The position numbers and the translations under genes were made by a program. The notes under the pieces are model-generated. The model worked only from the letters and a program-made list of their open reading frames with translations. It did not search any database and was not told the origin of the DNA. From the IMG/VR virus record IMGVR_UViG_3300005537_000001, positions 304,055 to 368,054 of that record: DNA of 64,000 nt. One strand, written 5' to 3'. Shown here one piece after another: positions 48,485-63,383 of this stretch (positions are counted from its first letter, which is position 1; every line of letters begins with the position of its first letter).

Positions 48485-49159
48485 ATGCTAGTTTGTGAAC
48501 TCCTAGAAGACGATCAATCGCGCGTAAATGTGGGCGGAAGCGCTCAAGCATCATTCGCGCGCGTTTTCAAGAAGAAATTTCCTAATTCCCGCGTAATATC
48601 TATCTCGCCGCGGTCATCGCAGGCAGCTGACATCATCGTGAAGCACAACGGTAAGAAGCTGCAGTTTGAGGTAAAGGCGAGGACTGGACCAGAAAGAACC
48701 AACGTGGTTTATGACAAGTCGCTAAGACGCGGCGCCCACGACCCTATCTTGGATGCTTTCGCGCGATCATTTGGCAAGGAACGCACGTTTAGCGAGCTTA
48801 TTGATTCGTATCGAAAGAAGGATTCTAGAATTGGTTTCCCAGGGGATCTAGGAGTTGTTTCATCCGGAAAGATACCACGTGAGTTCAACTCAACCGATCC
48901 AACGTTTCTTTCACAGCTGCGACAAGCTGTTATCAGGCGCCTGCAGGCTAACGGTGATAACTATTTTGCGATCCATGATCTTTCTACGGGTATCACTTCG
49001 GTGTATTTCACCGGTTTAGGTGATAACGTGCTTGGAGCTAAACCATATCCGAAGCTTTCATCTGTTCAGATAGACACGTACGGTGGAGGATACAAAGGTG
49101 GTATGCGGGTTGGGATCAAGGCCGTTATCGCGGCTTCGAGCAAAACTATCGCGCTGTAG
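48485..49159 (+). CDS. PD-(D/E)xK-type nuclease with class-I leader MLVCELLE
   Basis: ADI.V......QFEVK core; basic protein. Confidence 0.6.
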   Translation: MLVCELLEDDQSRVNVGGSAQASFARVFKKKFPNSRVISISPRSSQAADIIVKHNGKKLQFEVKARTGPERTNVVYDKSLRRGAHDPILDAFARSFGKERTFSELIDSYRKKDSRIGFPGDLGVVSSGKIPREFNSTDPTFLSQLRQAVIRRLQANGDNYFAIHDLSTGITSVYFTGLGDNVLGAKPYPKLSSVQIDTYGGGYKGGMRVGIKAVIAASSKTIAL

Positions 49160-49197: not shown

Positions 49198-49240
49198 ATC
49201 TGTGAATTCAATGTGTTCAGGTTATCTGACGGGAGACTCT

Positions 49241-49858
49241 ATGTCAAAGCTTATTCCTCTGTATGAGTATTTCAACCCAGTTGAAGCTCAATTGGTTGAG
49301 TCTCGGGACGCGCAGAAGAATCTTTATCTAGCTGGTAGAATGATGGCGGGTGAGGCAAAGAACCTCAACAACCGCAGCTATCCAGTTACCGAAATTGCTA
49401 AGGCGGTTGGTCTCATCAACCAACGAATTAAGGAAGGTGCCTTCATCGCTGGTGAGCTGAATCACCCAGACAACCTTTCAATCGATCTAAAGAATGTTTC
49501 ACACATCATCATCGAAGCATGGATGGATGGAAACAACGCCGTCGGTAAGTGCAGAATTTTGAACACCCCATCTGGACAAATAGTTCAGAGCCTCATTGAG
49601 GGTGGAATGAAGCTTGGAGTTTCTTCGCGTGGAACTGGAAACGTAAACCACAACGGCATAGTTGAGGATTTTTCGTTCGTAACGCTCGACATCGTAGCCC
49701 AACCATCCGGTCCAGGCTGCTACCCAGATGTAGTTCGTGAAGGTTTGGAACAGCCAAAGATTCGCACCCTCGCCGAAATGGCGGTGGAAGATGTCAAGGC
49801 GCAAAAATTCTTGACGCGTGAAGTGTTCAAGTTCATCGCATCACTGACGAAGAAGTAA
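49241..49858 (+). CDS. Prohead core protease gp21
   Basis: N.N.R.YP, GELNHP (His), VSH.I, IL.TP.G, LGVSSRG.G (Ser), D.VA.PS; ATG 49241 has a GGGAG SD. Confidence 0.93.
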   Translation: MSKLIPLYEYFNPVEAQLVESRDAQKNLYLAGRMMAGEAKNLNNRSYPVTEIAKAVGLINQRIKEGAFIAGELNHPDNLSIDLKNVSHIIIEAWMDGNNAVGKCRILNTPSGQIVQSLIEGGMKLGVSSRGTGNVNHNGIVEDFSFVTLDIVAQPSGPGCYPDVVREGLEQPKIRTLAEMAVEDVKAQKFLTREVFKFIASLTKK

Positions 49859-49859
49859 A

Positions 49860-50636
49860 ATGTTAATCCAAGATCTTCTAAACATTTCAGAGGCGATGGC
49901 TAAAAATCCTGGTGACGAGGGTATGCGTCAGCGCGCGATTAAGGACATTCTTCGCAAGCTTAACAACGGCGTCATTACCAAGAAATCAGCTGATAAGCAG
50001 TTGAAAGATAAAGGACATCCCGGAGTTGATCTCGTTGAAGCTTTCCCTATGCCGCGCGGAGAGGAAGGCAAAAAGGAGCACAAGAAGAAGCTTGACGCGA
50101 TGTCTCCAAAGGAGCTTCTCGCTCACGTGATGAAGCACGCGTCAGAAGAAAAGGATGACGGTCCAGTTACTGCAGCTGACATCAAGAACCATGCTCGCCG
50201 GCTTGCCAAGCGTCTTGGACATGATAACGCAGAGCACTACGCTGACAAGATTAAGGATCACGTAACCGAAGCCGTGAGCGAAAAAGCATCAGCGGAAATG
50301 ACGCGAATCAGAGCTGAAATGAAGAAGGTTAGCAGCGAAATAGATTCAATCATAGCTGATGGTGGCCAAGTTAGCACGACCGATCCACTCAACGTGAAGC
50401 TATCAAAGCTTAGAAAGGATCTTGTCAAGCTGCGTCGTTCTGTCAATGAAGAATTTCTAGAAGAAGCAAAAATGCCTTCTAAAGCATCAATGATGCGGGT
50501 AGCGATGGCGATCGCTAAGAAGCACAAGGTAGATTTTGACGACAAAGATGGTGCCGTGGTAAAGGCGGCTATCGTTGAGTGCTATGCTCAAGGTTATGAG
50601 GACGGCATAATATCGGTAGAGGGTGGAGAAGTATAA
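49860..50636 (+). CDS. Prohead core / internal head protein (multi-segment)
   Basis: Leader MLIQDLLNISE; charged segments separated by LVE, VTE, VNE and LEE. Confidence 0.6.
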   Translation: MLIQDLLNISEAMAKNPGDEGMRQRAIKDILRKLNNGVITKKSADKQLKDKGHPGVDLVEAFPMPRGEEGKKEHKKKLDAMSPKELLAHVMKHASEEKDDGPVTAADIKNHARRLAKRLGHDNAEHYADKIKDHVTEAVSEKASAEMTRIRAEMKKVSSEIDSIIADGGQVSTTDPLNVKLSKLRKDLVKLRRSVNEEFLEEAKMPSKASMMRVAMAIAKKHKVDFDDKDGAVVKAAIVECYAQGYEDGIISVEGGEV

Positions 50637-50947
50637 TGGATCAAGCAGCACGAGACGCTCTGCGCGCGCTAGCCGGAATAAAACCAGCACCCAAAGGTGC
50701 TCCAGGTGTTCTCAAGTCGGTATTCGAAGGAATGCCAACCGATAAGAACGCGCTGCGGGTAATGGCTGGCCTCCCAGTTAAAGAGGATACTACCGGTCCA
50801 GCTATCGTACAGCCAGTAGTACCAACACCAGCTCCACCACTAACGCAGGGTGGTCCAGTAGAAGCACCGGAAACAGATTTGGATAAGGTCGAGAAGCTTC
50901 TTCACGAAGCAATCGCTCTTTTGAATAACGTTAAGAAGGCCAAGTAG
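50636..50947 (+). CDS. Small head-module protein with two LR.[LM]AG motifs
   Basis: ALRALAGI and ALRVMAGL. Confidence 0.65.
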   Translation: MDQAARDALRALAGIKPAPKGAPGVLKSVFEGMPTDKNALRVMAGLPVKEDTTGPAIVQPVVPTPAPPLTQGGPVEAPETDLDKVEKLLHEAIALLNNVKKAK

Positions 50948-50968
50948 GCTAACCACAAGGGGATATAA

Positions 50969-52309
50969 ATGGAAAACCAGAGACTAAAAGAACTAGCTGG
51001 ACTCATCACTGAAAAGAAGTGGTCTGGTGAAGTTAAGACAAAGTGGAAGCCTACCGAAGGTACATTCACCGGTAAGGCAGGATCAATCGTTAAGGCTCTC
51101 TTGGATGCTCCAGGTGGTGCCAAGAAGGCCATGTCGCGCTTGAACTTCTACATCAACCGCGCCGGCGATAAGCTTGAGAACAGGGAAGAGCTTGAAAAAG
51201 CTAAGGCCGCTCTCGAGAAGAAAATTGCCGCCATGAAGGAAGAAGTAGAGGGTGTCGCTCGTCGCGCTGGCATCATTCTTGAAAAGAAGAGTGAACCAGA
51301 GGACATGGAACCAGATATGGACATGGGTGATGGCGATGAGGCTCCAAAGGCTAAGGGCGATGATGAAGAGGAAGAGTCACTTCCAAAGATCGTCAAGAAG
51401 ATCGCTAAGAAGGCGGTCGGTAAAGATGTCGAGGAACTCGAAGAGCTCATCATGAAGGTTTACAGCGCTGGCCACAAGGACGGTGAGAAGGAAGCTTCAG
51501 AGAAGAAGGAAAAATCCGTCAAGGAGAGCGTCAGCCTAACTGAAAAATTCCACGTTAAGAAAGGCAAAAAGGTTATGATGAGCGGCTCAAAGGCCGAATG
51601 TGAGGAATTTGCCGACGAGCACGGTGGTGAAGTCGTTAAGGGCGAGCCTATGACCGAGCAGGAGCTAGCTGAGCGTCATCACGTTAAGAAGAAGGGTAAG
51701 GTTGTCAAGAGCGGATCGAAGGCTGAAATGGATGCCATGGCTGCTGGTGACAAGGAAATGACCGTTCACAAGGGTGAGGAAATGACCGAGGAAGAACTTT
51801 CCGAGAAGCACCACGTTAAGAAGGGTGGTAAGGTAACGTTCAAGGGCAGCAAGAAAGGCGCTATGGATCACGCCGATGAGCATGGTGGTCAAATAGTTAA
51901 GGGCGATCCTGATGAGCAGATGGACGAAGAAATCGATCTTGAGTCCGCCATCCTAGAGGATGAGGCGGCAGCCAAGAAGATGCTGTCAATGCTTGACCAT
52001 CATGGTAAAACTGTAATGACGTCGATGGGCAAGGGAGTAATCACCGGCATCGTTAAGCAGGCGAAGACGACTGCTGACGGTAAGGCTGGTCCATACGTTC
52101 ACAGCGTAACCGTAAGGATGGGCGACAACACAGTTCACGTGATGCCTGCAAATCAAGTTAAGCTCTTCAAGGGCAAGAAACCCGATGGCAAGATGCTACC
52201 AAAGGGTGTTGGCTCACTAGCCATCGCGAGCGCTGACAAAGGCGTAGTTGCAAATGGTGGTAAGGAGTCAGGAACTAAGCCATCCGGCAAGAGCATGTGG
52301 AAGGCCTAA
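50969..52309 (+). CDS. Internal head/core protein: LAG tag, DUF3175-like domain, three His/Lys repeats
   Basis: RLKELAGLITE; KWS...AMSRLNFYINRAG..L....LEKAK (DUF3175-like); three copies of E[KR][FH]HVKK.....GSK. Confidence 0.65.
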   Translation: MENQRLKELAGLITEKKWSGEVKTKWKPTEGTFTGKAGSIVKALLDAPGGAKKAMSRLNFYINRAGDKLENREELEKAKAALEKKIAAMKEEVEGVARRAGIILEKKSEPEDMEPDMDMGDGDEAPKAKGDDEEEESLPKIVKKIAKKAVGKDVEELEELIMKVYSAGHKDGEKEASEKKEKSVKESVSLTEKFHVKKGKKVMMSGSKAECEEFADEHGGEVVKGEPMTEQELAERHHVKKKGKVVKSGSKAEMDAMAAGDKEMTVHKGEEMTEEELSEKHHVKKGGKVTFKGSKKGAMDHADEHGGQIVKGDPDEQMDEEIDLESAILEDEAAAKKMLSMLDHHGKTVMTSMGKGVITGIVKQAKTTADGKAGPYVHSVTVRMGDNTVHVMPANQVKLFKGKKPDGKMLPKGVGSLAIASADKGVVANGGKESGTKPSGKSMWKA

Positions 52310-52594
52310 GTGGATGAATCTCGCCTCAAGAGACTCGCTGGTATTTTAACCGAAGAGGCCGATAAGAAGGTAATTCCTATCGGCCTCCACTTCGGTCTTG
52401 GCGACGGAGGCAACATGCACAAGGCGGTCGACGCGCTGCTTGAAGCTGGAATTGAAGTGGACATGAATTATTCGATGGGTGTTTATTATTTCAACTTCAA
52501 GAGTGAAAAGCTTGCCGATGAAGCTCACAGGATTGTAGCTAAAGTTATCGATAAGAAAAAAGAGCAGAAGTGGAGCGAAAATGCTAGTACGTGA
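52310..52594 (+). CDS. Small protein with LAG tag; paralogue of the next gene
   Basis: GTG start; RLKRLAGILTE; HFG...KA..AL..A.[IV]E.D....G..YF.F. Confidence 0.7.
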   Translation: MDESRLKRLAGILTEEADKKVIPIGLHFGLGDGGNMHKAVDALLEAGIEVDMNYSMGVYYFNFKSEKLADEAHRIVAKVIDKKKEQKWSENAST

Positions 52595-52850
52595 ACTGTT
52601 GGAAGCAAAAATGACCAAACCAGATTATAAGAACTGGTATGGTAATATACATTTCGGTTTTGAACATAAGCCAAACGCTACCAAGGCTGCAGCAGCTCTG
52701 AAGAAAGCTGACGTTGAATTTGATAGCGATACTAACGGCGGCATCACCTATTTCTATTTTGATACCAAATCTGACATGAAGAAAGCTATCAAGATTGTAA
52801 CCCCAGTTATTGATGCATCCAAGGAATCCGAATGGGGTTCATCCGAATAA
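52581..52850 (+). CDS. Small protein with class-I leader; paralogue of the previous gene
   Basis: MLVRELLE; same HFG...KA..AL..A.VE.D...G..YF.F...VID..KE..W core. Confidence 0.7.
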   Translation: MLVRELLEAKMTKPDYKNWYGNIHFGFEHKPNATKAAAALKKADVEFDSDTNGGITYFYFDTKSDMKKAIKIVTPVIDASKESEWGSSE

Positions 52851-53459
52851 ATGGATATTAGCAAGTTACGAAAATTAGCTGGAATGCCATCTGCCACGGT
52901 TAGCAAGAAGATACTAACTGAAGCTGCAGAGTCAAAGCGCGTAATCGTGCTAAATGGATCACTGCACCCACCTGGTAAATCCCACACACGAAAGATAGCT
53001 GAAAAATTTCTTAAGCTGATACCGAATTCAACCGGTGAAATAGTTGATTTGGTTGACTACGACATTAAGCCCGGTAACGGTGCTGATGCTGCTGATGATG
53101 ATTGGAAAACTATTCTACCAAAGATACTTGAGTGCGATGTTCTAGTATGGGCTACACCTCTCTGGTGGGGTAACCACTCATCGCTTATTCAACGAGCGAT
53201 CGAGAGAATGGATTCGCTAACCGACAAGAAGGGATTTCCGGTAACGATTAAGAATAAATTTGCCGCGATATTGATTAGCGGTGCCGATGATGGCGCTCAA
53301 TCAACTCAGGCGGGTTTGATGGAAGTATCTACCTATTTCGGATTTACACTTCCACCAGTGTGTGGATTTTATAGTTTGGAAAATGGTAAGTGGGATGATG
53401 AATCCGAAAAACAGTTGAAAATTACAGCTGATAATTTGGCGCAGGCTCTGTCTCGCTAA
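52851..53459 (+). CDS. Flavodoxin-like NAD(P)H-dependent FMN reductase with LAG tag
   Basis: VIVLNGS.....S.T; DDW..I..KILE.D.LV.ATP.WWG..SS.....IERMD; NK.A......DG. Confidence 0.85.
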   Translation: MDISKLRKLAGMPSATVSKKILTEAAESKRVIVLNGSLHPPGKSHTRKIAEKFLKLIPNSTGEIVDLVDYDIKPGNGADAADDDWKTILPKILECDVLVWATPLWWGNHSSLIQRAIERMDSLTDKKGFPVTIKNKFAAILISGADDGAQSTQAGLMEVSTYFGFTLPPVCGFYSLENGKWDDESEKQLKITADNLAQALSR

Positions 53460-53516
53460 ATTTCAGAACTCGCGCTGCAATCACATTGACGGCGCTATAA
53501 CAATAAGGAGACGACA

Positions 53517-53717
53517 ATGGCTGATACAAACGCTCTAAAGAGCATGTTGAACAACTTTATTAATGATAAGCCTGAAGAGGCTACTCTTGATCTTCATGGT
53601 TACTTGACAACAAAGATGAAGGACGTTGCGGGTATTAGCGTAGCTGATGAACCACTTGTGGATGACGACACCGTTCCAGAAGTTGACCCCGAAGCTACCC
53701 AAGAAGCTACAGAGTAA
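53517..53717 (+). CDS. Small acidic prohead core protein (gp67/gp68-like position)
   Basis: SD AAGGAG; acidic tail; KMKDVAGI motif; precedes the scaffold. Confidence 0.55.
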   Translation: MADTNALKSMLNNFINDKPEEATLDLHGYLTTKMKDVAGISVADEPLVDDDTVPEVDPEATQEATE

Positions 53718-53788
53718 GCCTGATAAGTTGAAAGCAGGTAAGTTGAGGCGCCAAAAGCGCCGGTTTTTAGCGAATTTTTCGTGTGGCC

Positions 53789-53796
53789 CATAAATA
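53789..53796 (+). promoter_or_regulatory. Late promoter CATAAATA for scaffold-MCP
   Basis: Intergenic, about 110 nt upstream of the scaffold start. Confidence 0.75.
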
Positions 53797-53905
53797 AAAT
53801 CGTACGTTTCACGTAGATTTGTAATATGCAAACGCGTAAGGTTCAAAGCCTTTAGAGACGAATAAAAATCAGTCTCTATCCCACCCTTTTATAGGAGTTA
53901 AACTG

Positions 53906-54793
53906 ATGGATGAAATCCTACAGAAATTGCTAAGCTCTGAGCTACTCAGCGAAGAAGCCAAGGCAGAAATCTCCACTCAGTGGACTACCGCGGTTGAGTC
54001 TTACAAGACTACAGTTCGCGAGGAAGTAACACTCGAAGTGAGAAATGAAATTGCCGAACAGTGGGCAACTGAACGTGACGCTCTAGTTGAGAATGTCGAA
54101 ACGTTCGTTGCAAAGAAACTTGATGAAGAAATTGCAGAGCTAAAGTCAGACATTGAGCGCTTTCGCGACCTCGAGGCAGAATACGCCGAGAAGATCGTTG
54201 AAGAAAAGCACGCGATGGCCGAAACCCTCTCAGCAGAACTTGATGCGCTAGTTGAGAAAATGGATGCCTTCTTTGAGCTACGCCTCAGCGAAGAATTCCA
54301 AGAGCTCAAGGAAGATCTCCAGATCGTTCGCGAGAATGAATTCGGTCGTCAGATTTTCGAAGCCTACTCAACGACGTTCAACAAGAGCTTTGTTGATGAA
54401 GAGTCAACAGCCTCTAAGCTTGCAGCTGCAAACACAGAACTCGAAGAAGCTCAAAAGAAGATCAGCGCCCTTGAGGAATCAGGTGCGAAGATGGTTCGTG
54501 AAGCTAAGCTCGAAAAGATCCTTGCTCCTCTCAACGGTAAGAAGAAGGAACAGATGGCATTCGTACTTGCCAATGTTGAAACTTCCCGCCTTGAAGAAGC
54601 ATACAACCACTTCATTGGTCGCGTTCTGAAGGAAGAGCCTTCAGCGCAGCCTGGAAGCGATGCATCGCCAGCTCAGATCACTGAGTCAGCGTCCGTTGTA
54701 GTAACTGGCAATGAGTCTACCGAGACGCCAGCAAAGCCAGCAGTAGCCACCGACAAGTTTCGTGAACTCAAGAAACTTGCTGGCATTGCCTAG
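53906..54793 (+). CDS. Prohead scaffold protein gp22
   Basis: Acidic coiled coil, LSEE.K..I, N.FGR.IFEAY, C-terminal FRELKKLAGIA; directly upstream of the MCP. Confidence 0.85.
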   Translation: MDEILQKLLSSELLSEEAKAEISTQWTTAVESYKTTVREEVTLEVRNEIAEQWATERDALVENVETFVAKKLDEEIAELKSDIERFRDLEAEYAEKIVEEKHAMAETLSAELDALVEKMDAFFELRLSEEFQELKEDLQIVRENEFGRQIFEAYSTTFNKSFVDEESTASKLAAANTELEEAQKKISALEESGAKMVREAKLEKILAPLNGKKKEQMAFVLANVETSRLEEAYNHFIGRVLKEEPSAQPGSDASPAQITESASVVVTGNESTETPAKPAVATDKFRELKKLAGIA

Positions 54794-54818
54794 TAACTAG
54801 TCCAAAAGGAGAATTTCA

Positions 54819-56087
54819 ATGGAACTATTTGAAAATTGGAGCGAAACCAAAGAGACACTTCTTGAAGGTCTCAGCGAAAGCAAGAAGAAGATTCTAGGCC
54901 CAGTCCTAGAGAACCAGATGGCTCACTTGCAGGAAACTGCAGCAGCTGGTACTTCCTCAGCAGGAGCTATTGGTAACTTCCAGAAGATCGTTATCCCAAT
55001 GATCCGCAGAATCATCCCAGGCACGATTGCAACCGAACTCGTTGGTGTACAGCCAATGGCCGGTCCAGTTGGCTTGGTCTACTCACTCCGCTTCTTGTTC
55101 TCAGAAGCAGTCACCGGTCCAGCAGCTACGGTTTCTGGTTTGGATGACAACTTCGTAACCAACCCAGGGGACGAAGTCTTCGCGAACAACTCTAAGACAA
55201 AGCGCTTCTATTCCACGTCTGACGCCCCAGCGGCTCCAGGTGGTCCAGCGGCTTCTACGTCTCAGGGCTTCGCGGCAACCACTTCTGATTACGAAGCCTT
55301 CGGCGGTCGTGCAATGACCTTGGAAGTCTTGAAGCAAACTGTAACCGCGGGTTCCCGTAAGTTGCAAGCTCGCTGGACTCCAGAAGCGATGCAGGATATC
55401 AAGGCCTCTCACGGCCTAGACCTCGAAGCAGAAATCACTGCTTCACTATCCGCTGCAGTCGTTTCCGAAATCGACAACGAAATCATCAACGACTTGATCG
55501 CTCTCGCGGGCACAACCCAGTCGTTCGATATGTCAGGTACCTTCACCGGTGTTCCTAACTACGTTGGCGATCGTCATGCAGTTCTTGGTGTGCTCATCAA
55601 CCAAGTTGCAAACGAAATTGCACGTAAGACGCGTCGCGGCCCAGCTAACTGGATCGTTGTTTCCCCACTCGTAGTTTCCGTTCTTCAGTCTGCCGCTAAG
55701 TCAGTCTTCGCGCCAGCCGTAAGCGGTTCCTTCGATGGTCCAAACAACACCAAGCTAGTTGGTACGTTGAACGGCTCAATCAAGGTATACACCTACATCT
55801 ACTTCGACGGATCACCACAGTCAATCGGTGGTTTGCCATCTGGTCAAGTAGAGCCAATCCTCCTTGGTTTCAAGGGTGGTTCAGGTGAAATGGACTCTGG
55901 CTACTTCTACTGCCCATACATCCCATTGATGTCAAGCGGTGTCGTAGTTGACCCAAATACTTTTAATCCACACGTATCGTTGATGACTCGTTACGGTAAG
56001 GCCACGTTCACCTCGACGGCAACGTCTCTTGGTAACTCGGCAGATTACTATGGCAGAATCAGCGTCGCTAACCTCTCATTCGTCTAA
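54819..56087 (+). CDS. Major capsid protein gp23
   Basis: LENQ; IP.IRR..P..IA.ELVGVQPM.GP.G; A.SRKL.ARWT.EA.QD....HGLD.E; YCPYIPL; TRYG. Confidence 0.97.
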   Translation: MELFENWSETKETLLEGLSESKKKILGPVLENQMAHLQETAAAGTSSAGAIGNFQKIVIPMIRRIIPGTIATELVGVQPMAGPVGLVYSLRFLFSEAVTGPAATVSGLDDNFVTNPGDEVFANNSKTKRFYSTSDAPAAPGGPAASTSQGFAATTSDYEAFGGRAMTLEVLKQTVTAGSRKLQARWTPEAMQDIKASHGLDLEAEITASLSAAVVSEIDNEIINDLIALAGTTQSFDMSGTFTGVPNYVGDRHAVLGVLINQVANEIARKTRRGPANWIVVSPLVVSVLQSAAKSVFAPAVSGSFDGPNNTKLVGTLNGSIKVYTYIYFDGSPQSIGGLPSGQVEPILLGFKGGSGEMDSGYFYCPYIPLMSSGVVVDPNTFNPHVSLMTRYGKATFTSTATSLGNSADYYGRISVANLSFV

Positions 56088-56132
56088 CACCGAAAGAGAC
56101 AAAGCAAACGTCAAGTTGATTGTTTGAAAGTA

Positions 56133-56165
56133 GACGGGATATCGAAAGATATCCCGTTTTACTTT
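56133..56165 (+). terminator. Rho-independent terminator after the MCP
   Basis: ACGGGATATC-GAAA-GATATCCCGT then TTT. Confidence 0.9.
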
Positions 56166-56186
56166 GCGTGGGAATTGTGATATAAT
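56158..56186 (+). promoter_or_regulatory. Sigma70-type promoter overlapping the terminator tail
   Basis: TTTACT-17 bp-TATAAT with TG at the extended -10. Confidence 0.65.
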
Positions 56187-56216
56187 TGGTACTTCACTAG
56201 ATTATCGGAGTATTGG

Positions 56217-56525
56217 ATGAAGGTTCACGATAGAATCTGTCCTAAGTGTAATGGCGTTTTGGAACAAACTCGCACTCGATCAGATCAATGTAAAGCTTGC
56301 TTCTTGATCGAGAAACGGGAACTGGATATTCTTTCCGAGAAAGATAGAATAGCTGAGTGGGGTTATAAGTTTCTCGAAGGCCCATGGGTAGACAAATTCA
56401 ATCATCGCTGCTATAAAATTTTAACACCATGCGGGCATGAATGGTCTTTGCCATTTACAAATCTCATCAAAAATATCAAGAAAGTGCCAAATTCCAAGCC
56501 ATGTGGTATATGTAGAGGTAGATAA
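56217..56525 (+). CDS. Zinc-ribbon protein
   Basis: CPKC, CKAC, PCGHEW, CGIC. Confidence 0.65.
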   Translation: MKVHDRICPKCNGVLEQTRTRSDQCKACFLIEKRELDILSEKDRIAEWGYKFLEGPWVDKFNHRCYKILTPCGHEWSLPFTNLIKNIKKVPNSKPCGICRGR

Positions 56526-56527
56526 TT

Positions 56528-57088
56528 TTGATCAATCATGATTGGTATGTTTATCTTTGGATTGATCCCGCAAATAATATTCCACGTTATGTTGGTAAAG
56601 GTAGAAAAGGCAGAGCATTTGATCACATTGAAGCTGAATCACCTTATCGATACGCATGGATGTTAAAGAAGCGTCATCGCGAAGGATATGTTTGCTTACC
56701 ACGTATTGTTTGGGTGAATGGCGCAGTTGAAGCTAAAGAATTAGAAATTTTTCTCATAGCATGGATTGGACGTGAGGATAAAGGACTCGGGTCACTATGG
56801 AATAAAACAGACGGCGGTGAGGGCACTATTGGATTGTCACGCAAAATGATCGATGCGCGAAATAGGGCCATTGGAAATACCCAAAGAAACATTCCAAAAA
56901 CACCGCAACATATCGCAGCCCTCAAGCAGGGTCAGCGCAAAAGAACAGCTAGATCAGCAGCATTTATTGGAGTGTCATTAGATGAGTGGTATGCTATGCC
57001 ACGTAATGAACGTGTTCGTAGACGGAGAAAAATAGCTAAGACCATACCTCGCATTTTGCTCGCTGAGTGGGGCCGCTTTCTAGTTTGA
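56528..57088 (+). mobile_element. GIY-YIG (LEM-3-like subtype) homing endonuclease
   Basis: YVY...DP....RYVGKG...RA..H; A..LE..LI...GR....G.L.N.TDGGEG. Confidence 0.8.
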
Positions 57089-57189
57089 ATATTTGGATTA
57101 ATGATTGGACTCCGAAAAAGCAGCCACCGCGTCGGTGGTGGCTAATCTACAAATGCTACAATGGACCAAAATTTGGGTAAAGGTGCATA

Positions 57190-58089
57190 ATGAAAATTTT
57201 TACAAAAACCAAGTGCTGGATTTTACGAAAAGCACTAGAAAACAATCTTTTCACGGTGATGTTACCGCTGAAAGGTAAAATTAACAGTCTCCCCAAAAAG
57301 TGCTACAACATTTTTTCATATGCGGACCACGAGGGGTTAAAACGCTATCGTTTAGAATATGTTGCCGGAGATAAAATTCTAGCTAGACCATTTATCAAGC
57401 ATGAATCTACCACTGATTCATTACCAGAAACCGTTGAAATACATGCGTCTGACATTTTCAAAGGAAAATTGAGCATTCATGTATGGGCCAAAAACACCAA
57501 AGTTGAATGGCAAGAAGCTGATGATAACTTCTACCTTTTAGGGAATGATCGTCAATATACTAGCGTCTGGGATATTTTGATTTATGAGTGGTTGTTCGGT
57601 AGACTGCTTCACGACGCGTGGGAATGGTTTAAGCAAAAGTGGTTCAATTCCAGATTCAAAACTATCCAAGATCTACAAGAGGTCCGACGATCGTGCATAA
57701 ATGTGCTCATGTCAAAAAGTCCATTTAAAGCTGATGATGTTATGGAAAATCTATATGATATGTCTAAATTGAAGTGGATGAAGCTTTACAGATTACCGGA
57801 TGGTGGATATGGAAAAACAAAAAAGAAATTAAACATGTATCTGACAGATTTAGTTAATGGAGAAGAATTGCAACGTGGGCCAAATGATAGTTTTGTGCAA
57901 GGTAAAATTTTTGGAGTGTACGAAGATATCGACACCAAGGATCGCGAATACACATCTACTAGGAAGCTTACGTTGTTACTTTTGATTGCAACTTTAATTT
58001 CAGCTTTTGCTTCAGTTATTGAAATCGTGCATCATTGGGATAAGGTAATTTTGCTTTCTGATTTTTGGCTTAAACATCAAGGAGTATGA
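57190..58089 (+). CDS. AT-rich hypothetical protein with C-terminal TM helix
   Basis: LTLLLLIATLISAFASVIEIV near the C-terminus; followed by a terminator. Confidence 0.65.
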   Translation: MKIFTKTKCWILRKALENNLFTVMLPLKGKINSLPKKCYNIFSYADHEGLKRYRLEYVAGDKILARPFIKHESTTDSLPETVEIHASDIFKGKLSIHVWAKNTKVEWQEADDNFYLLGNDRQYTSVWDILIYEWLFGRLLHDAWEWFKQKWFNSRFKTIQDLQEVRRSCINVLMSKSPFKADDVMENLYDMSKLKWMKLYRLPDGGYGKTKKKLNMYLTDLVNGEELQRGPNDSFVQGKIFGVYEDIDTKDREYTSTRKLTLLLLIATLISAFASVIEIVHHWDKVILLSDFWLKHQGV

Positions 58090-58159
58090 AATTGGAACAT
58101 ACGCTCTCTAAGATATAAAGTTTGAGGCTGTCAAGCAGAAGGATCAAGTAAAACTCAAG

Positions 58160-58193
58160 AAGGGCAGGTGCTTAAACATCTGCCCTTTCTTTT
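58160..58193 (+). terminator. Rho-independent terminator
   Basis: AAGGGCAGGTG-CTTAAA-CATCTGCCCTT then TCTTTT. Confidence 0.75.
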
Positions 58194-58210
58194 GCTCCGG
58201 GTCTGGATGC

Positions 58211-58218
58211 ACTAAATA
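58211..58218 (+). promoter_or_regulatory. Late promoter variant ACTAAATA
   Basis: Between the terminator and the GGAG SD of 58239. Confidence 0.55.
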
Positions 58219-58238
58219 GTCTACCAGCTGGAGATAAC

Positions 58239-58808
58239 ATGCTAGTCCGTGAACTGCTTCAAGAAATAGAAAAATTGAACCTGCCAAAAGGTGATTACGC
58301 GCTAGATCAAGTAATGCGCGGCATGTTTGATACCTCAGCATACCGTCCGTACAAGAAGATAGGTTCTGCCGGTGGTTACGATTTTCTTATCTATCAGCAC
58401 ATAATCGGTAAGCTGAGCGACCTAATGGGCATCATCAAGCGCGGCAAGGAAATTGTTGGGTCGGTAGTTCTCAAGAAGCTGCCATCCAGCGAGGCTGGCA
58501 CCCACGCCTACGTTACCGACGCGGTACAGGTTAAGGAAGCTCACCGTGGAAAAAATCTCGGGGTTGAGCTTTATCGCAAGCTCATAAGCTACGGTCTTAT
58601 CTTGGTAAGTTCCGACAAGCAATCTGCTGGTGGTCAGGCGATCTGGAAAAAGCTGCTGCAGGACAAATCAATCAACGTAGAACGGTTCAACATGCATGAT
58701 GATTTTCACGGCAGGAAAAATTTCTCGAAGCCGGTAAAATCCCTTGCCGCGATGTATCATTCACCATTTAACTCGCAGTTTGACAAGCGCTTCGTAGCGT
58801 TCAAATAA
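58239..58808 (+). CDS. GNAT-family acetyltransferase with class-I leader MLVRELLQE
   Basis: V.V...HRGKNLG..LY acetyl-CoA motif; L.SS..QS.GG..IW..L. Confidence 0.8.
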   Translation: MLVRELLQEIEKLNLPKGDYALDQVMRGMFDTSAYRPYKKIGSAGGYDFLIYQHIIGKLSDLMGIIKRGKEIVGSVVLKKLPSSEAGTHAYVTDAVQVKEAHRGKNLGVELYRKLISYGLILVSSDKQSAGGQAIWKKLLQDKSINVERFNMHDDFHGRKNFSKPVKSLAAMYHSPFNSQFDKRFVAFK

Positions 58809-58818
58809 GGAATAATCT

Positions 58819-59148
58819 ATGCTTCTTGAAGAACTTAAATCGGGTGATACTGACACATACTTTCGAAATATGTTTCGTAGCCACATGAACGCGGATAAGA
58901 TCAAACAGATAGTGGACAAGTTAAGATCTGAAAATAAACTTGACAAGGGAAAGATAGTGAAGGGAATTCTGCATGCCATCAAGGATGACGGCGCCGCCAA
59001 TCTTTTTATCACGGTTGGCGAGGATAGATATCCATCTCTATTTTTGGGTACCTTAAAACGTATTAGGCGCGCGCTCGGTGATGATGATCCGGGTGAAGAG
59101 CTTGACGCTATCCAAAAATCATTGGAATACAACACGGATGAAAAATAA
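58819..59148 (+). CDS. Small protein with one degenerate copy of the ...E[LF].AI.KS repeat domain
   Basis: MLLEEL leader; DK.KIVK.IL..IKDD ... EELDAIQKSL. Confidence 0.65.
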   Translation: MLLEELKSGDTDTYFRNMFRSHMNADKIKQIVDKLRSENKLDKGKIVKGILHAIKDDGAANLFITVGEDRYPSLFLGTLKRIRRALGDDDPGEELDAIQKSLEYNTDEK

Positions 59149-59726
59149 TGAATAACTTTACAACAGCCCTAAATCACGTCATGCTCTACGAGGTTGGACC
59201 ATGGTTCAACACCAACGATCCAGACACTATCGCGGGCACCACCGGTACCCCCCAGCTCGACCGCAAGTGTGGCTTCGTGAACATCGCCGGCGACGCCGGT
59301 GGAGTAACGAAGTACGGAATAGCGTCAGCCGATAATCCAGGCGTCGACGTTGCTAACCTCACCCTCACCCAGGCATCCCAGATCTACCAGGAGAAGTATT
59401 GGCTAGCTGGGCACTGCGACAAGATCTCTAGCGGACCGGTCACCATCTTCCAGTTCGACATGATCGTGAACAACGGCGGTGGTCGCGCCGCCAAGATCCT
59501 GCAGCAGGCAGCTGGAGTCACGGTTGATGGTAGCATCGGTCCTGGCACCCTTGCCGCGGTAAACGCGCTCGATCCAGCTACCCTGATCAATTCCCTGTCA
59601 ACAATCCGCGCCGCCCGCTACAACGCGATCGCGCAGAACGACCCTTCCCAGGCTCGCTTTCTAGCTGGCTGGTTGCGCCGGTGCACAGAGGTTACCCAAT
59701 TTGCTTTAGCGCAGATTCAGCCATAA
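59148..59726 (+). CDS. Glycoside hydrolase family 108 endolysin with PG-binding C-terminus
   Basis: E.G...GFVN..GD.GG.TKYGI; LT..QA..IY...YW; FD..VN.G...A...LQ...GV..DG.IGP.TL; RF..GW.RR. Confidence 0.88.
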   Translation: MNNFTTALNHVMLYEVGPWFNTNDPDTIAGTTGTPQLDRKCGFVNIAGDAGGVTKYGIASADNPGVDVANLTLTQASQIYQEKYWLAGHCDKISSGPVTIFQFDMIVNNGGGRAAKILQQAAGVTVDGSIGPGTLAAVNALDPATLINSLSTIRAARYNAIAQNDPSQARFLAGWLRRCTEVTQFALAQIQP

Positions 59727-59729
59727 ATA
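59722..59729 (+). promoter_or_regulatory. Late promoter CATAAATA
   Basis: Overlaps the endolysin stop. Confidence 0.7.
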
Positions 59730-59750
59730 GAATATCAATTGGAGGCTTGA

Positions 59751-60032
59751 ATGCTTACGCGCGAATTGCTCAGTGAAAAGGTTGCACCGCTACCAGCTGG
59801 AATGTCCATTGAGGATTCATTCGTTGAGCTGCAGAAGCGGCTTGGTGCCGCCAAGGCAGCGTTTGGCATCATCAACAAGATCAAGGACAAGGAGCAGCGC
59901 AAGAAGCACTTTTCCTCCGTCACTGGAAACATGAACACGCTTCGAGCCCAGCTTTCAAGGCTTGACAAGCAGCTTAACGATTTTTACCGAGCCGAAAGAA
60001 GCTACGAGCGCGGTGAGCTTCACGCAGAATAA
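59751..60032 (+). CDS. Small helical protein with class-I leader MLTRELLSE
   Basis: GGAGG SD, late promoter. Confidence 0.7.
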   Translation: MLTRELLSEKVAPLPAGMSIEDSFVELQKRLGAAKAAFGIINKIKDKEQRKKHFSSVTGNMNTLRAQLSRLDKQLNDFYRAERSYERGELHAE

Positions 60033-60043
60033 CGGAGACAACC

Positions 60044-60631
60044 ATGTCAAATTTCAATGAATTACGCAAGCTAGCTGGCATTCCCATCATTGTGGAAGAT
60101 CAACCATATACCAACGCCGAAGCTCCACAGCGTGAGATACGAGAGCCAAAAGTTGGACCAGATGGTTTGTTTGTTCAACCACGAGATTTTAGCGCGGCTC
60201 GAGAAATTCTTGAGGTAGAAAACCGCACCCGCTTTGCCGGTCACTTCAAGTTTGCCGACATGTACACCGGGCAAACTCGTACCTACGATGAGCTTGGACG
60301 CTACAACTGTGGTCGCTGCAACCAGTACCAAGATCCAGGCGATCAGTGCCTGCTCTTGAAGATTAAGAAGGTTGATCATCAAGCTGGAAGCTGCGGTGAC
60401 TGGGAAAATATCTGCGCCGGCGATCCAGAGATGCTCCTCCATCTCAAGAGCGTCGAGTCAGCTGGATATGGCGTTGCCAAGAATGGCATCGGCTTTGGCT
60501 GCCTCCGCTGTCCATACGCATCGGCGGCGTACAAGCCAGACAGTCGCGGCCGCGATCTCTACTGCGGTAAGGGCGACTTCAGAACGTTTTCCACCGCGTG
60601 CTGCGGGTTGAACGGCGCGCCGACAGTATGA
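60044..60631 (+). CDS. Cys-rich protein (two HiPIP-like/metal-binding units) with LAG tag
   Basis: NELRKLAGI; CGRC.QY....QC......V....GSC..W; CLRC.YA...YC.......ACC. Confidence 0.6.
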   Translation: MSNFNELRKLAGIPIIVEDQPYTNAEAPQREIREPKVGPDGLFVQPRDFSAAREILEVENRTRFAGHFKFADMYTGQTRTYDELGRYNCGRCNQYQDPGDQCLLLKIKKVDHQAGSCGDWENICAGDPEMLLHLKSVESAGYGVAKNGIGFGCLRCPYASAAYKPDSRGRDLYCGKGDFRTFSTACCGLNGAPTV

Positions 60632-60761: not shown

Positions 60762-61529
60762 ATGACCCATTCATACTATCACGCACCGCGCACCTTCAAG
60801 GTCGTGCGCAGCGTTCCAGATCCTAGCGTACAAAATTTCCTATCAATATCAAAACCAGTAGCTCTTCCAGCGGCTGTAGATCTTCGCCCTAGCTGCCCAC
60901 CGGTATATGATCAGGGCGATCTTGGCTCATGCACCGGCAACGCGATCGCGGCGGCGATTGAATTTGATCTCATGAAGCAGGGAAAATCACCCATCGCACC
61001 GTCACGCCTGTTCATCTACTACAACGAGCGCCTGATGGAAGGTGACGTTGGCGAGGATGCCGGCGCCCAAATTCACGACGGCATCAAGTGCATCGCCACC
61101 TACGGTGTTTGCGCCGAAGCTCTATGGCCATACAACCCAGCTGCATTTACCGTAAAGCCGAGCGCTGAAGCTTATGCCGCCGCGGCAGCTGAAAAGGCGC
61201 TGAGCTATTACGCGCTCGACATCACCGTTGACGCAATGAAGCAGGCGCTTGCCCAAGGCTATCCGATCGTTATTGGGATGCAGGTATTTGGAGAGATGGA
61301 AAGTGAATACGTAGCAAAAACCGGCCACGTTTCAATGCCATCAAATCCAAGCGACAGCCTTGGTGGTCACTGCGTGCTAGTAGTTGGGTATGATGACTCG
61401 AAGCAGTGCCTGATAGTGCGCAACAGCTGGGGTGCCGATTGGGGCATCGGCGGGTACTTTACCCTGCCGTATGCGTACGTAACTCCTGAGCTGATGACCG
61501 ATTTTTGGGTTATTACCGCGGTAGCATGA
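60762..61529 (+). CDS. Papain-like C1 cysteine peptidase
   Basis: LP..VDLR; DQG.LGSCT (Gln, Cys); SRLFIYY; GGHCV (His); RNSWG..WG..GY (Asn). Confidence 0.92.
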   Translation: MTHSYYHAPRTFKVVRSVPDPSVQNFLSISKPVALPAAVDLRPSCPPVYDQGDLGSCTGNAIAAAIEFDLMKQGKSPIAPSRLFIYYNERLMEGDVGEDAGAQIHDGIKCIATYGVCAEALWPYNPAAFTVKPSAEAYAAAAAEKALSYYALDITVDAMKQALAQGYPIVIGMQVFGEMESEYVAKTGHVSMPSNPSDSLGGHCVLVVGYDDSKQCLIVRNSWGADWGIGGYFTLPYAYVTPELMTDFWVITAVA

Positions 61530-62389
61530 TGAAGCTTGTAGCTGAACTTTCTAGGTTGATTCCACGCGGCCTCCTGCAGGAGGCCGATTTGTCTGGTGAG
61601 AGGGATTCTGCTGGAAAATTCACGAGAGTTGCGCGCGGCAGGCTTATTGGAAGGTTTGCTCAAGGATTTAGCCTACAGCAAATTCACAGCATGATGAAGG
61701 TTAAGAAATTAGATAGCGCGGAGCAAGATGACATCTATGACGAGATTCTAGCTGAAAAGGATGTCGTCATTAAGCGCGCGCTGCACTACCTGAAGGATGA
61801 TGATGTCGCGGCGCTAAAGCAGCTGATATTTTACGCTAAAAAGTTTGGGCATTATTACCCAGAATTCAAGGCGATAGAAAAGAGCATGGGAGTACAAGAA
61901 GGTTCCTCGCAGCGCGCGTTCTCAGCTGGATATGGTGACGATGAAAACATTCAATTTGTAAATCGACGCCGTGGAAAGAAGGTTGTAAAGAGCGTCATCG
62001 TGAAGGAAGAGAAGCTCACCTTTACCGCGCAGGAACTAACGCTAGATAGCCTACGCAGTCAAGGAGATTTGGTGGTATTAGTAATGAGCGATTTAGATAT
62101 TGGTGACTATTACGGCATTTCCGTAATATTTAGGCGCAATGGTAAAATTGAATCCTCGATTGGAGATGCTGCTGCAAAGGCTGAATGGAAGAAATACAAA
62201 AATGAAATTATCAAAACAGCACTCGATTTTCTGCACATTGGCAACAAAGAAAAGCTTCTCAAGGACATCCTAACCGATTACAAAGACGATCTTATCTATC
62301 TTGTAAAAGCGCTCATAAACCTTTCGCGAAAACAAGGTTTTGACTACCCTGAATTCAAGGCAATTGAGAAGAGTTTAAAAGCAAAGTAA
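61526..62389 (+). CDS. Multi-segment protein with two YPEFKAIEKS repeat domains
   Basis: ATGA-coupled to the peptidase; GHYYPEFKAIEKSM and GFDYPEFKAIEKSL; LQE and VQE junctions. Confidence 0.7.
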   Translation: MMKLVAELSRLIPRGLLQEADLSGERDSAGKFTRVARGRLIGRFAQGFSLQQIHSMMKVKKLDSAEQDDIYDEILAEKDVVIKRALHYLKDDDVAALKQLIFYAKKFGHYYPEFKAIEKSMGVQEGSSQRAFSAGYGDDENIQFVNRRRGKKVVKSVIVKEEKLTFTAQELTLDSLRSQGDLVVLVMSDLDIGDYYGISVIFRRNGKIESSIGDAAAKAEWKKYKNEIIKTALDFLHIGNKEKLLKDILTDYKDDLIYLVKALINLSRKQGFDYPEFKAIEKSLKAK

Positions 62390-62693: not shown

Positions 62694-63383
62694 ATGCTAA
62701 AATGGTATGTTTATCTGTGGAGGGATCCACAAGATAATATTCCACGCTATGTTGGCAAGGGTCAAGAAAATAGAGTTTGGGATCATATTCAAAAATCTTC
62801 TGCAACCTATTATTCGCGTCTACTAAAGAAAAGATACAGGGACGGATATATCTGTCTACCTCAATTGATATGGGTGAATACGGAAAAAGAAGCTTATGAA
62901 CTCGAGACACTCCTCATTCAAACAATTGGTAGAAAAGATCGGGGTGAAGGTCCCCTTCTTAATAATACCGATGGTGGCGGTTCACTTAATCCATCTCCCG
63001 AAACTAAATTGCTAATAGCTGAGAGGGCTCGCATAAGCACGAAAATTTCATGGACCATTCCTGTTATCAGAGAAAAACGAACAGCATCTCTGCGTTTAGC
63101 AGCTTCAGATCCAGAAGTTCAGCGTAAAAAGGGAAATTCCCTAAAAATAACGTTATCTACACCAGAAGCTAAACTCAAAAGAAGTGCTACTATTAGAGAG
63201 ATGCTTTCTAGACCAGAGGTGCAGACCAAACGAAGTGCATCTATTAAATTAGCATTTTCTCATGAAGAAACTAAAGCGAAAAGATCAGCTTATCTTACAT
63301 TACCTGCTTCTTGCATCGTATGTCGTAAAACAACCTCTGTTGCAGGCGTGAACGCACATTTTAAGTGCCACCCTAAATCATGA
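62694..63383 (+). mobile_element. GIY-YIG (LEM-3-like subtype) homing endonuclease, paralogue of 56528-57088
   Basis: WYVYLW.DP..NIPRYVGKG; L.N.TDGG; about 16-aa PE...KRS repeats; C-terminal CIVC...H..C. Confidence 0.8.

Follow-up and report, generated by a model that had tools for sequence, protein, structure and literature searches.

In an uncultured jumbo phage related to T4, the last few residues of the predicted capsid scaffold protein also occur at the front of several unrelated head-module proteins, each time followed by a [ILV]-x-E protease cut site, an arrangement that looks like a removable address label for loading proteins into the capsid. The window analyzed is a 64,000-nucleotide stretch of the virus record IMGVR_UViG_3300005537_000001 (positions 304,055 to 368,054), and coordinates below refer to positions within it; all genes described lie on the plus strand. 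The initial annotation had recognized the shared motif and its following cleavage sites, and this observation proved correct for every copy listed. Its interpretation, that a scaffold-mimic peptide docks enzymes inside the prohead and is then clipped off in an encapsulin-like addressing code, was only partly supported.

Distribution of the motif in the window and in related loci

The motif L[KR]xLAG occurs six times in the proteins of the window; one copy is the scaffold C-terminus and five sit at residues 6-15 of unrelated head-module proteins. Residue shuffling of the 61 predicted proteins gave a mean of 0.083 strict matches (maximum of 2 in 5000 shuffles), and a mean of 0.013 for matches at a protein terminus, where all six were observed. 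A six-frame scan found no copy on the minus strand or in a non-coding frame. Equal frequency of the motif in early genes had been put forward with the original observation as grounds for rejecting a packaging role; all copies were found to lie at 50.6-60.1 kb, with none in the tail, baseplate, or DNA-metabolism genes at 0-50 kb.

In 79 related loci, a looser form of the motif was found 131 times on the gene strand, against about 4 in shuffles, and twice on the other strand. These occurrences fall into three classes, namely the scaffold tail, N-terminal tags 2-5 kb upstream of the capsid gene, and a conserved internal copy in a small acidic protein. Of 38 N-terminal tags, 37 lie 2-5 kb upstream of the capsid gene and, apart from that of the window's own 60044 gene at about +5 kb, there is none elsewhere within 10 kb on either side. 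The N-terminal copies are conserved at protein N-termini in relatives and are attached to at least 13 body families that BLAST does not link. Synonymous codons differ among the 8 copies examined, indicating that selection acts on the peptide.

The tail itself is conserved across the scaffold family. It was present in 120 of 120 close homologs and in PA5oct, XacN1, and Xoo-sp13, while among 150 diverse representatives 91 matched and most others were near variants. However, PA5oct, XacN1, and Xoo-sp13 show no N-terminal copies nearby, and the tags are therefore a clade-specific addition that is not intrinsic to the role of the tail. Tags also track lineage-specific changes in the scaffold tail. 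One clade has the tail FLKRIAGI and tags ending in IAGI, RsoM2USA has the tail LKELGGV and the tag LKHLAGV, and in the related locus L047 the tail is IRMLSLAGV and the tag NRMCQLAGI; neighboring L048 has a similar tag, QRMQQLAGM, but its scaffold ORF ends without the tail motif. Permutation gave p = 0.0002-0.004 for this co-variation, although the test is not corrected for phylogeny and rests on about three independent events. A T4 gp21-type [LIV]-x-E site follows within 8 residues in 23 of 33 non-redundant tags, against a background of 14% (p about 1e-12), whereas three of the 33 have no such site within 20 residues.

Proteins of the head module

The head module begins with a portal protein (46814-48448), so assigned because its position and size match the annotated portal genes in the same place in RsoM2USA (ORF378, called a portal vertex protein; PMC8504454) and PA5oct; no family search was run on the window protein itself. 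A prohead protease of the T4 gp21 family is encoded at 49202-49858 (Pfam Peptidase_S77, E 2.2e-23), its likely true start being Met14, near 49241. The major capsid protein (54819-56087) belongs to the gp23 family (Pfam Gp23, E 2.2e-93), is 61% identical to the RsoM2USA protein, and carries an N-terminal propeptide that probably ends at HLQE.

The scaffold protein (53906-54793; 295 aa) is encoded immediately upstream of the capsid gene and ends FRELKKLAGIA, with the tail motif LKKLAGI at 54767-54787. Its identification rests on synteny, predicted structure, and weak N-terminal matches to Pfam T4_CASP in 5 of 12 family members (best E 6.7e-6). The window copy scored E 0.41, short of the cut-off, which leaves membership of the T4 gp22 family undecided, and BLASTP and hhalign comparisons with T4 gp22 were negative. 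AlphaFold2 predicts long helices, a disordered tether at residues 241-281 (pLDDT below 50), and a terminal helix at 282-291 ending at LAG, a layout that agrees with the tethered C-terminal peptides of P22- or 80alpha-type scaffolds. Contact of this peptide, or of the N-terminal tags, with the major capsid protein was not modeled, and no solved relative was found. Just upstream, a 66-aa acidic protein (53517-53717) contains an internal copy, KMKDVAGI (MKDVAGI at 53616-53636), that is conserved in most relatives as [KR]M[KR]x[VIL]AG[ILV]. It occupies the place of gp67/gp68-type core proteins in T4 but has no detectable similarity to T4 gp67, such that a core-protein role is inferred from position and composition only.

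Two of the tagged proteins carry more than one copy. The 103-aa product of 50636-50947 has ALRALAGI at residues 8-15 (LRALAGI at 50660-50680) and ALRVMAGL at residues 39-46 (LRVMAGL at 50753-50773), followed by VFE and VKE sites; multi-copy relatives exist, for example in the related loci L007, L012, and L018. The 446-aa product of 50969-52309 opens with RLKELAGLITE (LKELAGL at 50984-51004, ITE ending at 51013) and has a DUF3175-like segment, a degenerate second copy (ARRAGIILE, about residue 100), and three repeats of about 40 aa. It belongs to a family of 24 in relatives, 21 of which carry the N-terminal tag and several a second copy near residue 105. These two proteins may be core components rather than the enzyme cargo initially proposed.

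The 94-aa product of 52310-52594 has RLKRLAGILTE (LKRLAGI at 52325-52345, LTE ending at 52354); its GTG start is supported by ATG-started homologs with the same tag. The following gene (52581-52850; 89 aa) encodes a paralog with a homologous body (31% identity) but a swapped N-terminus, MLVRELLE (52581-52604). The product of 52851-53459 (202 aa) is an FMN reductase or WrbA-like flavoprotein with a 28-aa N-terminal extension bearing KLRKLAGM (LRKLAGM at 52866-52886) and ILTE at 52911-52922. Pfam FMN_red covers residues 30-169, all seven homologs examined lack the extension and start directly at the first strand, and in the AlphaFold2 model the tag helix spans residues 3-9, the linker at 16-25 has low confidence, and the fold starts at 29, placing the tag outside the folded domain; Foldseek recovered RosB, MsuE, and WrbA. 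The Cys-rich 195-aa product of 60044-60631 carries ELRKLAGIPIIVE (LRKLAGI at 60062-60082, IVE ending at 60097). Its family has 160 homologs with hypervariable N-termini, residing in head modules of P22-like, T4-like, and HK97-like phages, and only the window copy has LRKLAG. Part of this tag (G-I-P-Phi-Phi-x-E) also occurs in homologs from P22-like phages whose scaffold tails differ (RKMRGLN); this segment may be inherited rather than copied from the scaffold. An [ILV]-x-E site follows every N-terminal copy in the window, 3-5 residues after the tag in 50969, 52310, 60044, and the second copy of 50636, 12 residues after it in 52851, and 16 residues after the first copy of 50636.

Two features had been missed in the initial annotation, namely the relationship between 52310 and 52581 and a second recurrent N-terminal motif, MLVRELLE-like, on at least six neighboring genes. 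Besides 52581, it is seen in a 224-aa protein (48485-49159; MLVCELLE), a 258-aa protein (49860-50636; MLIQDLLNISE), a GNAT acetyltransferase-like protein of 189 aa (58239-58808; MLVRELLQEIE; Pfam Acetyltransf_1, E 4.6e-5), a 109-aa protein (58819-59148; MLLEELK), and a 93-aa protein (59751-60032; MLTRELLSE). The protease also has an N-terminus of this type. By eye, this motif (MLVRELLE, or MKLRELFE in relatives) resembles the T4 capsid targeting sequence (CTS), MKTYQEFIAE. Three families carry the scaffold-tail tag, the CTS-like tag, or no tag on the same body.

Interpretation and alternative explanations

The explanation we favor, with moderate confidence, is that the N-terminal copies constitute a cleavable prohead-targeting propeptide that shares the binding site of the scaffold tail. 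In this view, Phi-[RK]-x-[LM]-A-G-[ILM] is a short helix with a Gly cap that forms the tethered C-terminal docking peptide of the scaffold and, in this clade of uncultured jumbo phages, has been placed about five residues after the start Met of many unrelated proteins encoded between the protease and the scaffold. During prohead assembly, the N-terminal copy would occupy the site used by the scaffold tail, either on the inner face or propeptide of the gp23-type capsid protein or on another core component, and the tagged protein would thereby be co-assembled inside the shell. The gp21-family protease would then cut at the [LIV]-x-E site just after the tag and free the mature protein inside the head. 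The second, interchangeable tag (M-[LK]-Phi-x-E-[LI]-[LF]-E) would serve the same purpose. The analysis directly establishes the motif, its positions, conservation, modularity, and co-variation with the tail, together with the enrichment of cut sites and the presence of the protease, whereas binding, packaging, and cleavage are deduced from these. There is no experimental evidence of any kind; the only relevant proteome, that of RsoM2USA, covers just 10 gel bands and no tagged protein, and neither packaging of a foreign protein by the tag nor its removal in the virion was assayed. On comparative evidence, the N-terminal copies behave as modular, selected, cleavable tags that match the scaffold tail.

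It is possible, although less likely, that the motif mediates core-to-core assembly, with the scaffold tail, the small acidic protein, and the tagged proteins all binding a common site on the scaffold rod, or one another, without contacting the capsid shell; targeting and cleavage would still occur. The motif is shared by three classes of presumed core proteins, including multi-copy proteins (50636, 50969, and relatives) that look like cross-linkers, and in T4 internal proteins co-purify with gp22 and are said to have affinity for the core (PMC9026906). Conversely, in the scaffolds solved so far (P22, 80alpha), the tethered C-terminal peptide contacts the capsid protein (PMC5644958), and the predicted tether and helix found here match that pattern. 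Nothing in our data separates the two partners.

A role as a docking site (exosite) for the S77 protease, marking substrates for cutting rather than addressing them to the capsid, appears very unlikely. Every carrier is a likely substrate and a cut site follows the tag closely, but the capsid protein is also a substrate and lacks the motif, the scaffold copy lies at the extreme C-terminus beyond any useful cut site, gp21 is held to need no determinant beyond L/I-x-E (PMC9026906), and the protease bears its own CTS-like N-terminus. Least likely is that the shared N-termini are only a trace of common descent or local recombination with no targeting role. The genes are clustered and some carriers are paralogs (52310 and 52581); however, codons have diverged while the peptide is kept, the motif occurs on families that BLAST does not link and on an FMN reductase whose cellular relatives lack it, its position from the Met is fixed, cut sites are enriched, and it co-varies with the scaffold tail. 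A lipoprotein signal peptide (lipobox L-A-G-C) was also excluded, since the residue after Gly is always I, L, M, or V, the preceding residues are charged, and the same motif ends the scaffold.

Relationship to known packaging signals

The closest known system is the T4 CTS of internal proteins IPI, IPII, and IPIII, which is removed by gp21 (PMC9026906), rather than encapsulin cargo loading. Both are short N-terminal peptides on unrelated, non-essential head proteins, followed by an L/I-x-E site, in phages with a gp21-family protease and a gp23-family capsid protein. The LAG tag has no sequence similarity to the T4 CTS, starts about 5 residues after the Met, and matches the phage's own scaffold C-terminus, a link not described for T4, in which gp22 ends VYAKVASRF; the partner of the T4 CTS is still unknown (PMC9958956). 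The precedent for tail mimicry is the C-terminal "helix-and-hook" of the 80alpha scaffold, which is also carried by the unrelated SaPI1 protein CpmB, cryo-EM showing that the two bind the same capsid-protein site (PMC5644958). The layout here (tether, 10-residue helix, Gly, hydrophobic residue) is similar, but in 80alpha the mimic is C-terminal, sits on a competing scaffold encoded by a satellite, and redirects capsid size, whereas here the copies are N-terminal, phage-encoded, present on many proteins, and followed by protease sites. Encapsulin peptides likewise address enzymes to the interior of an HK97-fold shell, but they are C-terminal with a different consensus, are not cleaved, sit on cargo encoded next to a stand-alone shell gene, and work in shells without a portal, scaffold, or protease, whereas the tags here are N-terminal, followed by protease sites, and encoded in a tailed-phage head module with all three; the resemblance is functional only. 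The N-terminal packaging signal of P1 DarB and the head-protein propeptides of phiKZ and SPN3US are also found on packaged, ejected proteins (PMC9024508; PMC10052503), but no shared consensus with a scaffold terminus has been reported for them, and their cleavage motifs differ (S/A-x-E in phiKZ).

A broader and more tentative possibility, not excluded by the evidence but considered unlikely, is that head cargo in T4-related phages is addressed by copying the ends of the scaffold itself. The LAG tag copies the scaffold C-terminus in this clade, and the CTS-like tag may copy its N-terminus, since the window scaffold starts MDEILQKLL..E, against tags such as MLVRELLE. In T4, gp22 starts MLKEQLIAE|A, IPIII starts MKTYQEFIAE|A, and gp21 starts MNEPQLLIE. 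If this holds, cargo proteins enter the prohead as "pseudo-scaffold subunits," which would explain the long-unknown receptor of the T4 CTS and give a portable two-tag code. The 60044 family, with its lineage-specific N-termini in T4-like, P22-like, and HK97-like head modules, fits this idea.

How proteins are chosen for packaging into T4-type heads is still an open question. Here the proposed address label is the same peptide as the scaffold's own docking tail and the two change together across lineages, which points directly to a shared receptor and provides a concrete, testable model. It also offers short modular tags, with a built-in release site, for loading foreign proteins into large capsids. 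Furthermore, the model predicts that these jumbo phages deliver enzymes into the host, including an FMN reductase, a Cys-rich protein that may bind metal, and a GNAT acetyltransferase.

Head module and distribution of the motif

The window comprises the last 64 kb of the 368-kb uncultured viral contig IMGVR_UViG_3300005537_000001 and encodes a capsid protein of the T4 gp23 family, for which the nearest isolates are Ralstonia phage RsoM2USA (61% identity), Xanthomonas phages XacN1 and Xoo-sp13 and, more distantly, Pseudomonas phage PA5oct. The head module lies on the plus strand and consists, in order, of the portal (46814), a gene for a 224-aa protein, an S77/gp21-family protease (49202), eight small genes, a 295-aa helical protein (53906) and the capsid protein (54819). 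The 295-aa protein is considered here to be the scaffold because it sits immediately upstream of the capsid gene, its predicted structure is rod-like, and five of 12 family members give weak N-terminal matches to Pfam T4_CASP. Direct comparison with T4 gp22 by BLASTP and hhalign was negative, T4 gp22 does not share the tail and ends VYAKVASRF, and a PDB sequence search returned only spurious SRP54 hits. In the PA5oct record (locus L085, 7221-8972) the label "prohead assembly (scaffolding) protein" is on the gp21-like protease gene, while the likely scaffold (EST35_0153) is annotated as hypothetical; it is the only gene in that block without a virion mass-spectrometry flag, which fits a protein that is degraded during maturation.

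The recurrence of the scaffold tail on other proteins, as described in the initial annotation, is confirmed. The strict motif L[KR]xLAG occurs six times in the window, always in real plus-strand genes; one copy forms the last residues of the scaffold (ELKKLAGIA) and the other five start at residue 6-9 of proteins 50636, 50969, 52310, 52851 and 60044 (named here by start coordinate), although the start codons are predicted. Looser copies occur a second time in 50636 and inside the 66-aa protein 53517. Chance was rejected by residue shuffles of the 61 predicted proteins, which gave 0.083 strict hits on average and never more than two, while hits at protein termini averaged 0.013 against six observed. 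Enrichment in late genes had been proposed as a test of the targeting idea, and none of the genes at 0-50 kb carries the motif; however, the T4 late-promoter consensus TATAAATA, sought as a way to time the genes, is absent from the whole window (0 found, 1.85 expected), and late transcription signals in this clade probably differ from those of T4.

The motif generalizes to relatives. In 79 related loci from IMG/VR the loose motif occurs 131 times on the gene strand and twice on the other, against about four in shuffles. The hits fall into three classes, namely the scaffold C-terminus (63 hits), N-terminal tags (40 hits, with consensus M-D-x-N-x-L-R-K-L-A-G-L-P-x-Phi-x-E), and internal copies, which are either the conserved [KR]M[KR]x[VIL]AG[ILV] of the small acidic protein next to the scaffold or second and third copies inside proteins that already have an N-terminal tag. 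Of 38 N-terminal tags, 37 lie 2-5 kb upstream of the capsid gene, between protease and scaffold; apart from the window's own 60044 at about +5 kb, none lies elsewhere within 10 kb either side, the extent to which the relatives were examined, so that tags elsewhere in these genomes are unknown. The scaffold tail itself is an old, conserved feature. All 120 close scaffold homologs end in [FY]-[SA]-x-L-[RK]-[KR]-L-A-G-[IML] plus 0-5 residues, and PA5oct ends EELRRLAGIK, Xoo-sp13 LHLQRLAGINH, XacN1 NMMKLAGIKG and RsoM2USA ARLKELGGVN. A profile search of 1.8 billion representatives found 770 family members; of the best 150, 91 match a loose tail pattern and most of the rest are near variants or truncated fragments. 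AlphaFold2 places the tail as a 10-residue helix (282-291) ending at L-A-G, after a 40-residue low-confidence tether, a layout that resembles the tethered capsid-binding peptides of other scaffolds, notably the 80alpha "helix-and-hook" (PMC5644958).

N-terminal tags, cut sites and co-variation

The N-terminal copies are modular add-ons. The FMN reductase 52851 (Pfam FMN_red, residues 30-169) has a 28-residue extension that all seven detectable homologs lack, these beginning directly at the first beta-strand. In its model the tag is a short helix (3-9), followed by a low-confidence linker and then a confident flavodoxin fold, with RosB, MsuE and WrbA as the nearest solved structures. After removal of the first 30 residues, the tagged proteins of the relatives fall into at least 13 families that BLAST does not connect, and PHROGs returned no family for any cargo protein. 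The 446-aa tagged protein 50969 (50969-52309) has a DUF3175-like segment (residues 52-84, E 1.4e-6), three tandem repeats of about 40 aa (HHVKKGKKV..SGSKAE..) and a degenerate second motif copy (ARRAGIILE) near residue 100. The eight copies in the window use different synonymous codons for the conserved Leu, Ala and Gly, indicating that the peptide is being selected and is not a recently copied piece of DNA; recent DNA duplication and gene conversion were rejected on this basis.

Among 33 non-redundant tagged proteins, [LIV]-x-E follows the tag within 8 residues in 23 and within 12 residues in 27, whereas background rates at random positions are 14% and 21.5% (binomial p about 1e-12). This is the specificity established for T4 gp21 (PMC9026906), and the module encodes a gp21-family protease; cleavage itself is inferred, not shown. 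Three lineage-specific changes appear in both the tail and the tags. In the clade formed by related loci L050-L065 the scaffold ends FLKRIAGITS and the tags read ..ELFEIAGIK or ..KLMKIAGIT, so that Leu became Ile in both. In locus L047 the tail is IRMLSLAGV and the tag NRMCQLAGI, both losing the basic residue and gaining Arg-Met; neighboring L048 has a similar tag, QRMQQLAGM, but its scaffold ORF ends without the tail motif. In RsoM2USA the tail has G-G-V and the tag A-G-V. Across 28 de-replicated loci, tags are more like the tail of their own phage than those of other phages (permutation p = 0.0002 by identity and 0.004 by BLOSUM62), in a test that is not corrected for phylogeny and rests on about three independent events.

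A second, interchangeable tag and the Cys-rich protein family

At least six further window genes, 48485, 49860, 52581, 58239 (a GNAT), 58819 and 59751, all on the plus strand, begin M-L-[VTIL]-x-[ED]-L-L, and relatives have MKLRELFEAK, MLLQELFEAK and similar. The motif can be written M-[LK]-Phi-x-[ED]-[LI]-[LF]-(x)-E and was also noted at 26908-27561 (minus strand) and about 61526 (plus strand); prohead proteases in relatives also start this way (MKQQILIEH..). The pattern occurs at 29 of 1106 unique ORF starts in relatives against 4 of 5546 internal Met residues (odds ratio 37, p = 4e-19), and the Glu that completes a Phi-x-E site is usually at residue 8 or 9. It resembles the T4 capsid targeting sequence (CTS), read from the T4 record as MKTYQEFIAE|A in IPIII and MKTFKEF.. 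in IPI. In T4 (locus L083, 5024-6927, and L084, 297-416), gp22 (MLKEQLIAE|A), gp21 (MNEPQLLIE) and IPIII share a Q/E-Phi-Phi-x-E N-terminus, and T4 gp68 ends ..KRRKALGLS, faintly like RKLAGLS. In PA5oct, gp150 (MKINDIITE..) is a virion protein by mass spectrometry according to its record. The two distant genes at 26908-27561 (minus strand) and 61526-62389 (plus strand), which both start with MK[L]..EL-type N-termini, also share a C-terminal motif, ..DYPEFKAIEKS.., contained twice in the plus-strand one; one of the two lies among the tail genes.

Three protein families carry either tag on the same body. These are the family of 52310 (52310-52594) and 52581 (52581-52850), adjacent, overlapping paralogs of 31% identity that carry the LAG-type and the CTS-like tag, respectively; a 95-aa family in relatives; and the family of the Cys-rich protein 60044. 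Hybrid N-termini such as M..ELFEIAGIK also exist. This interchange is the strongest sign that both peptides do the same job, and T4 has defined that job experimentally.

The 160 homologs of 60044 (60044-60631) share a conserved body but have hypervariable N-termini. Only the window copy has LRKLAG; many have [RK]F[LK]GIP[VI]V.E, a few are CTS-like, and some have no extension. Their genes sit between portal and scaffold in P22-like modules (loci L087, L088 and L089), next to the portal in a T4-like module (L090) and after the ClpP protease in an HK97-like module (L091). In L091 (8001-8979) the protein and an adjacent unrelated GGACT-like protein share another N-terminal peptide, MTDRxxWIxxQLx[VI]AA[SG]F, which supports the idea of a mobile cargo that takes on a local address. 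The G-I-P-Phi-Phi-x-E part of the window tag may, however, be inherited within that family rather than copied from the scaffold. Tail-tag mimicry was sought in the other lineages carrying this family, but P22-like tails RKMRGLN against tags FLGIPVV, and a T4-like tail AAHLRALR, gave no convincing match. Scaffold-position proteins of the P22-like phages end ..RKMRGLN (L087, 10668-11879) and ..RKQRGLS (L088, 10699-11886), loosely resembling the jumbo-phage tail ..RKLAGMN, which could be chance or a common basic-Phi-x-G-Phi docking theme. A language-model atlas places 60044 nearest a viral cluster in which 12% of members carry the HiPIP iron-sulfur domain (score 0.87, a lead only); together with the tagged FMN reductase, this hints at packaged redox proteins.

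Other genes around the head module include a GH108 lysozyme with a peptidoglycan-binding domain and a papain-family (C1) peptidase (59148-59726 and 60762-61529), which lie downstream of the capsid gene and are both without a tag. A 966-aa protein with a peptidase/endolysin-like domain (43888-46788) sits just upstream of the portal, and genes at the same position exist in RsoM2USA (851 aa) and PA5oct (a 798-aa structural protein). Three genes (56528-57088, 62694-63383 and 38577-39320) look by eye, without a family search, like GIY-YIG-type homing endonucleases, two of them (..YVYLW.DP..NIPRYVGKG..) being paralogs that flank the region downstream of the capsid gene.

Interpretation and relation to known systems

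The best reading is a cleavable prohead-targeting propeptide that uses the binding site of the scaffold tail. The initial annotation, which proposed a scaffold-mimic peptide that docks enzymes in the prohead and is then clipped off, is thus supported in part, but its encapsulin-like addressing code is not upheld, since this is not an encapsulin-type peptide. That the tags are targeting propeptides is considered probable and that they use the same site as the tail somewhat more likely than not, whereas placement of that site on the capsid protein rather than on the core is considered slightly less likely than not. The evidence is computational throughout: the motif, its recurrence, the enrichment of cut sites and the tail-tag correspondence come directly from the sequences, while targeting and use of a shared site are inferred. 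Multimer modelling was not carried out, and the presence of tagged proteins in virions was not addressed by any proteome, that of RsoM2USA having only 10 identified bands and so saying nothing about its ORF380. The proteins with several copies, 50636 and 50969, whose relatives have two or three, each with a cut site, may be multivalent core components rather than cargo. The 66-aa protein occupies the place of T4 gp67/gp68 but shows no similarity to gp67 detectable by BLASTP. A lipobox or signal peptide was rejected, as no Cys follows the Gly and there is no hydrophobic stretch before the motif.

In this reading the system works like the T4 CTS plus gp21 system and fits the criteria for it that were tested, with the exception of sequence similarity. 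No report of a scaffold-tail/N-tag identity in phages was found in the literature searched, which was incomplete, although the mimicry of a scaffold tail has a solved precedent in 80alpha/CpmB. What differs here is that the copies are N-terminal, encoded by the phage itself, numerous and, if cleavage occurs as inferred, releasable.
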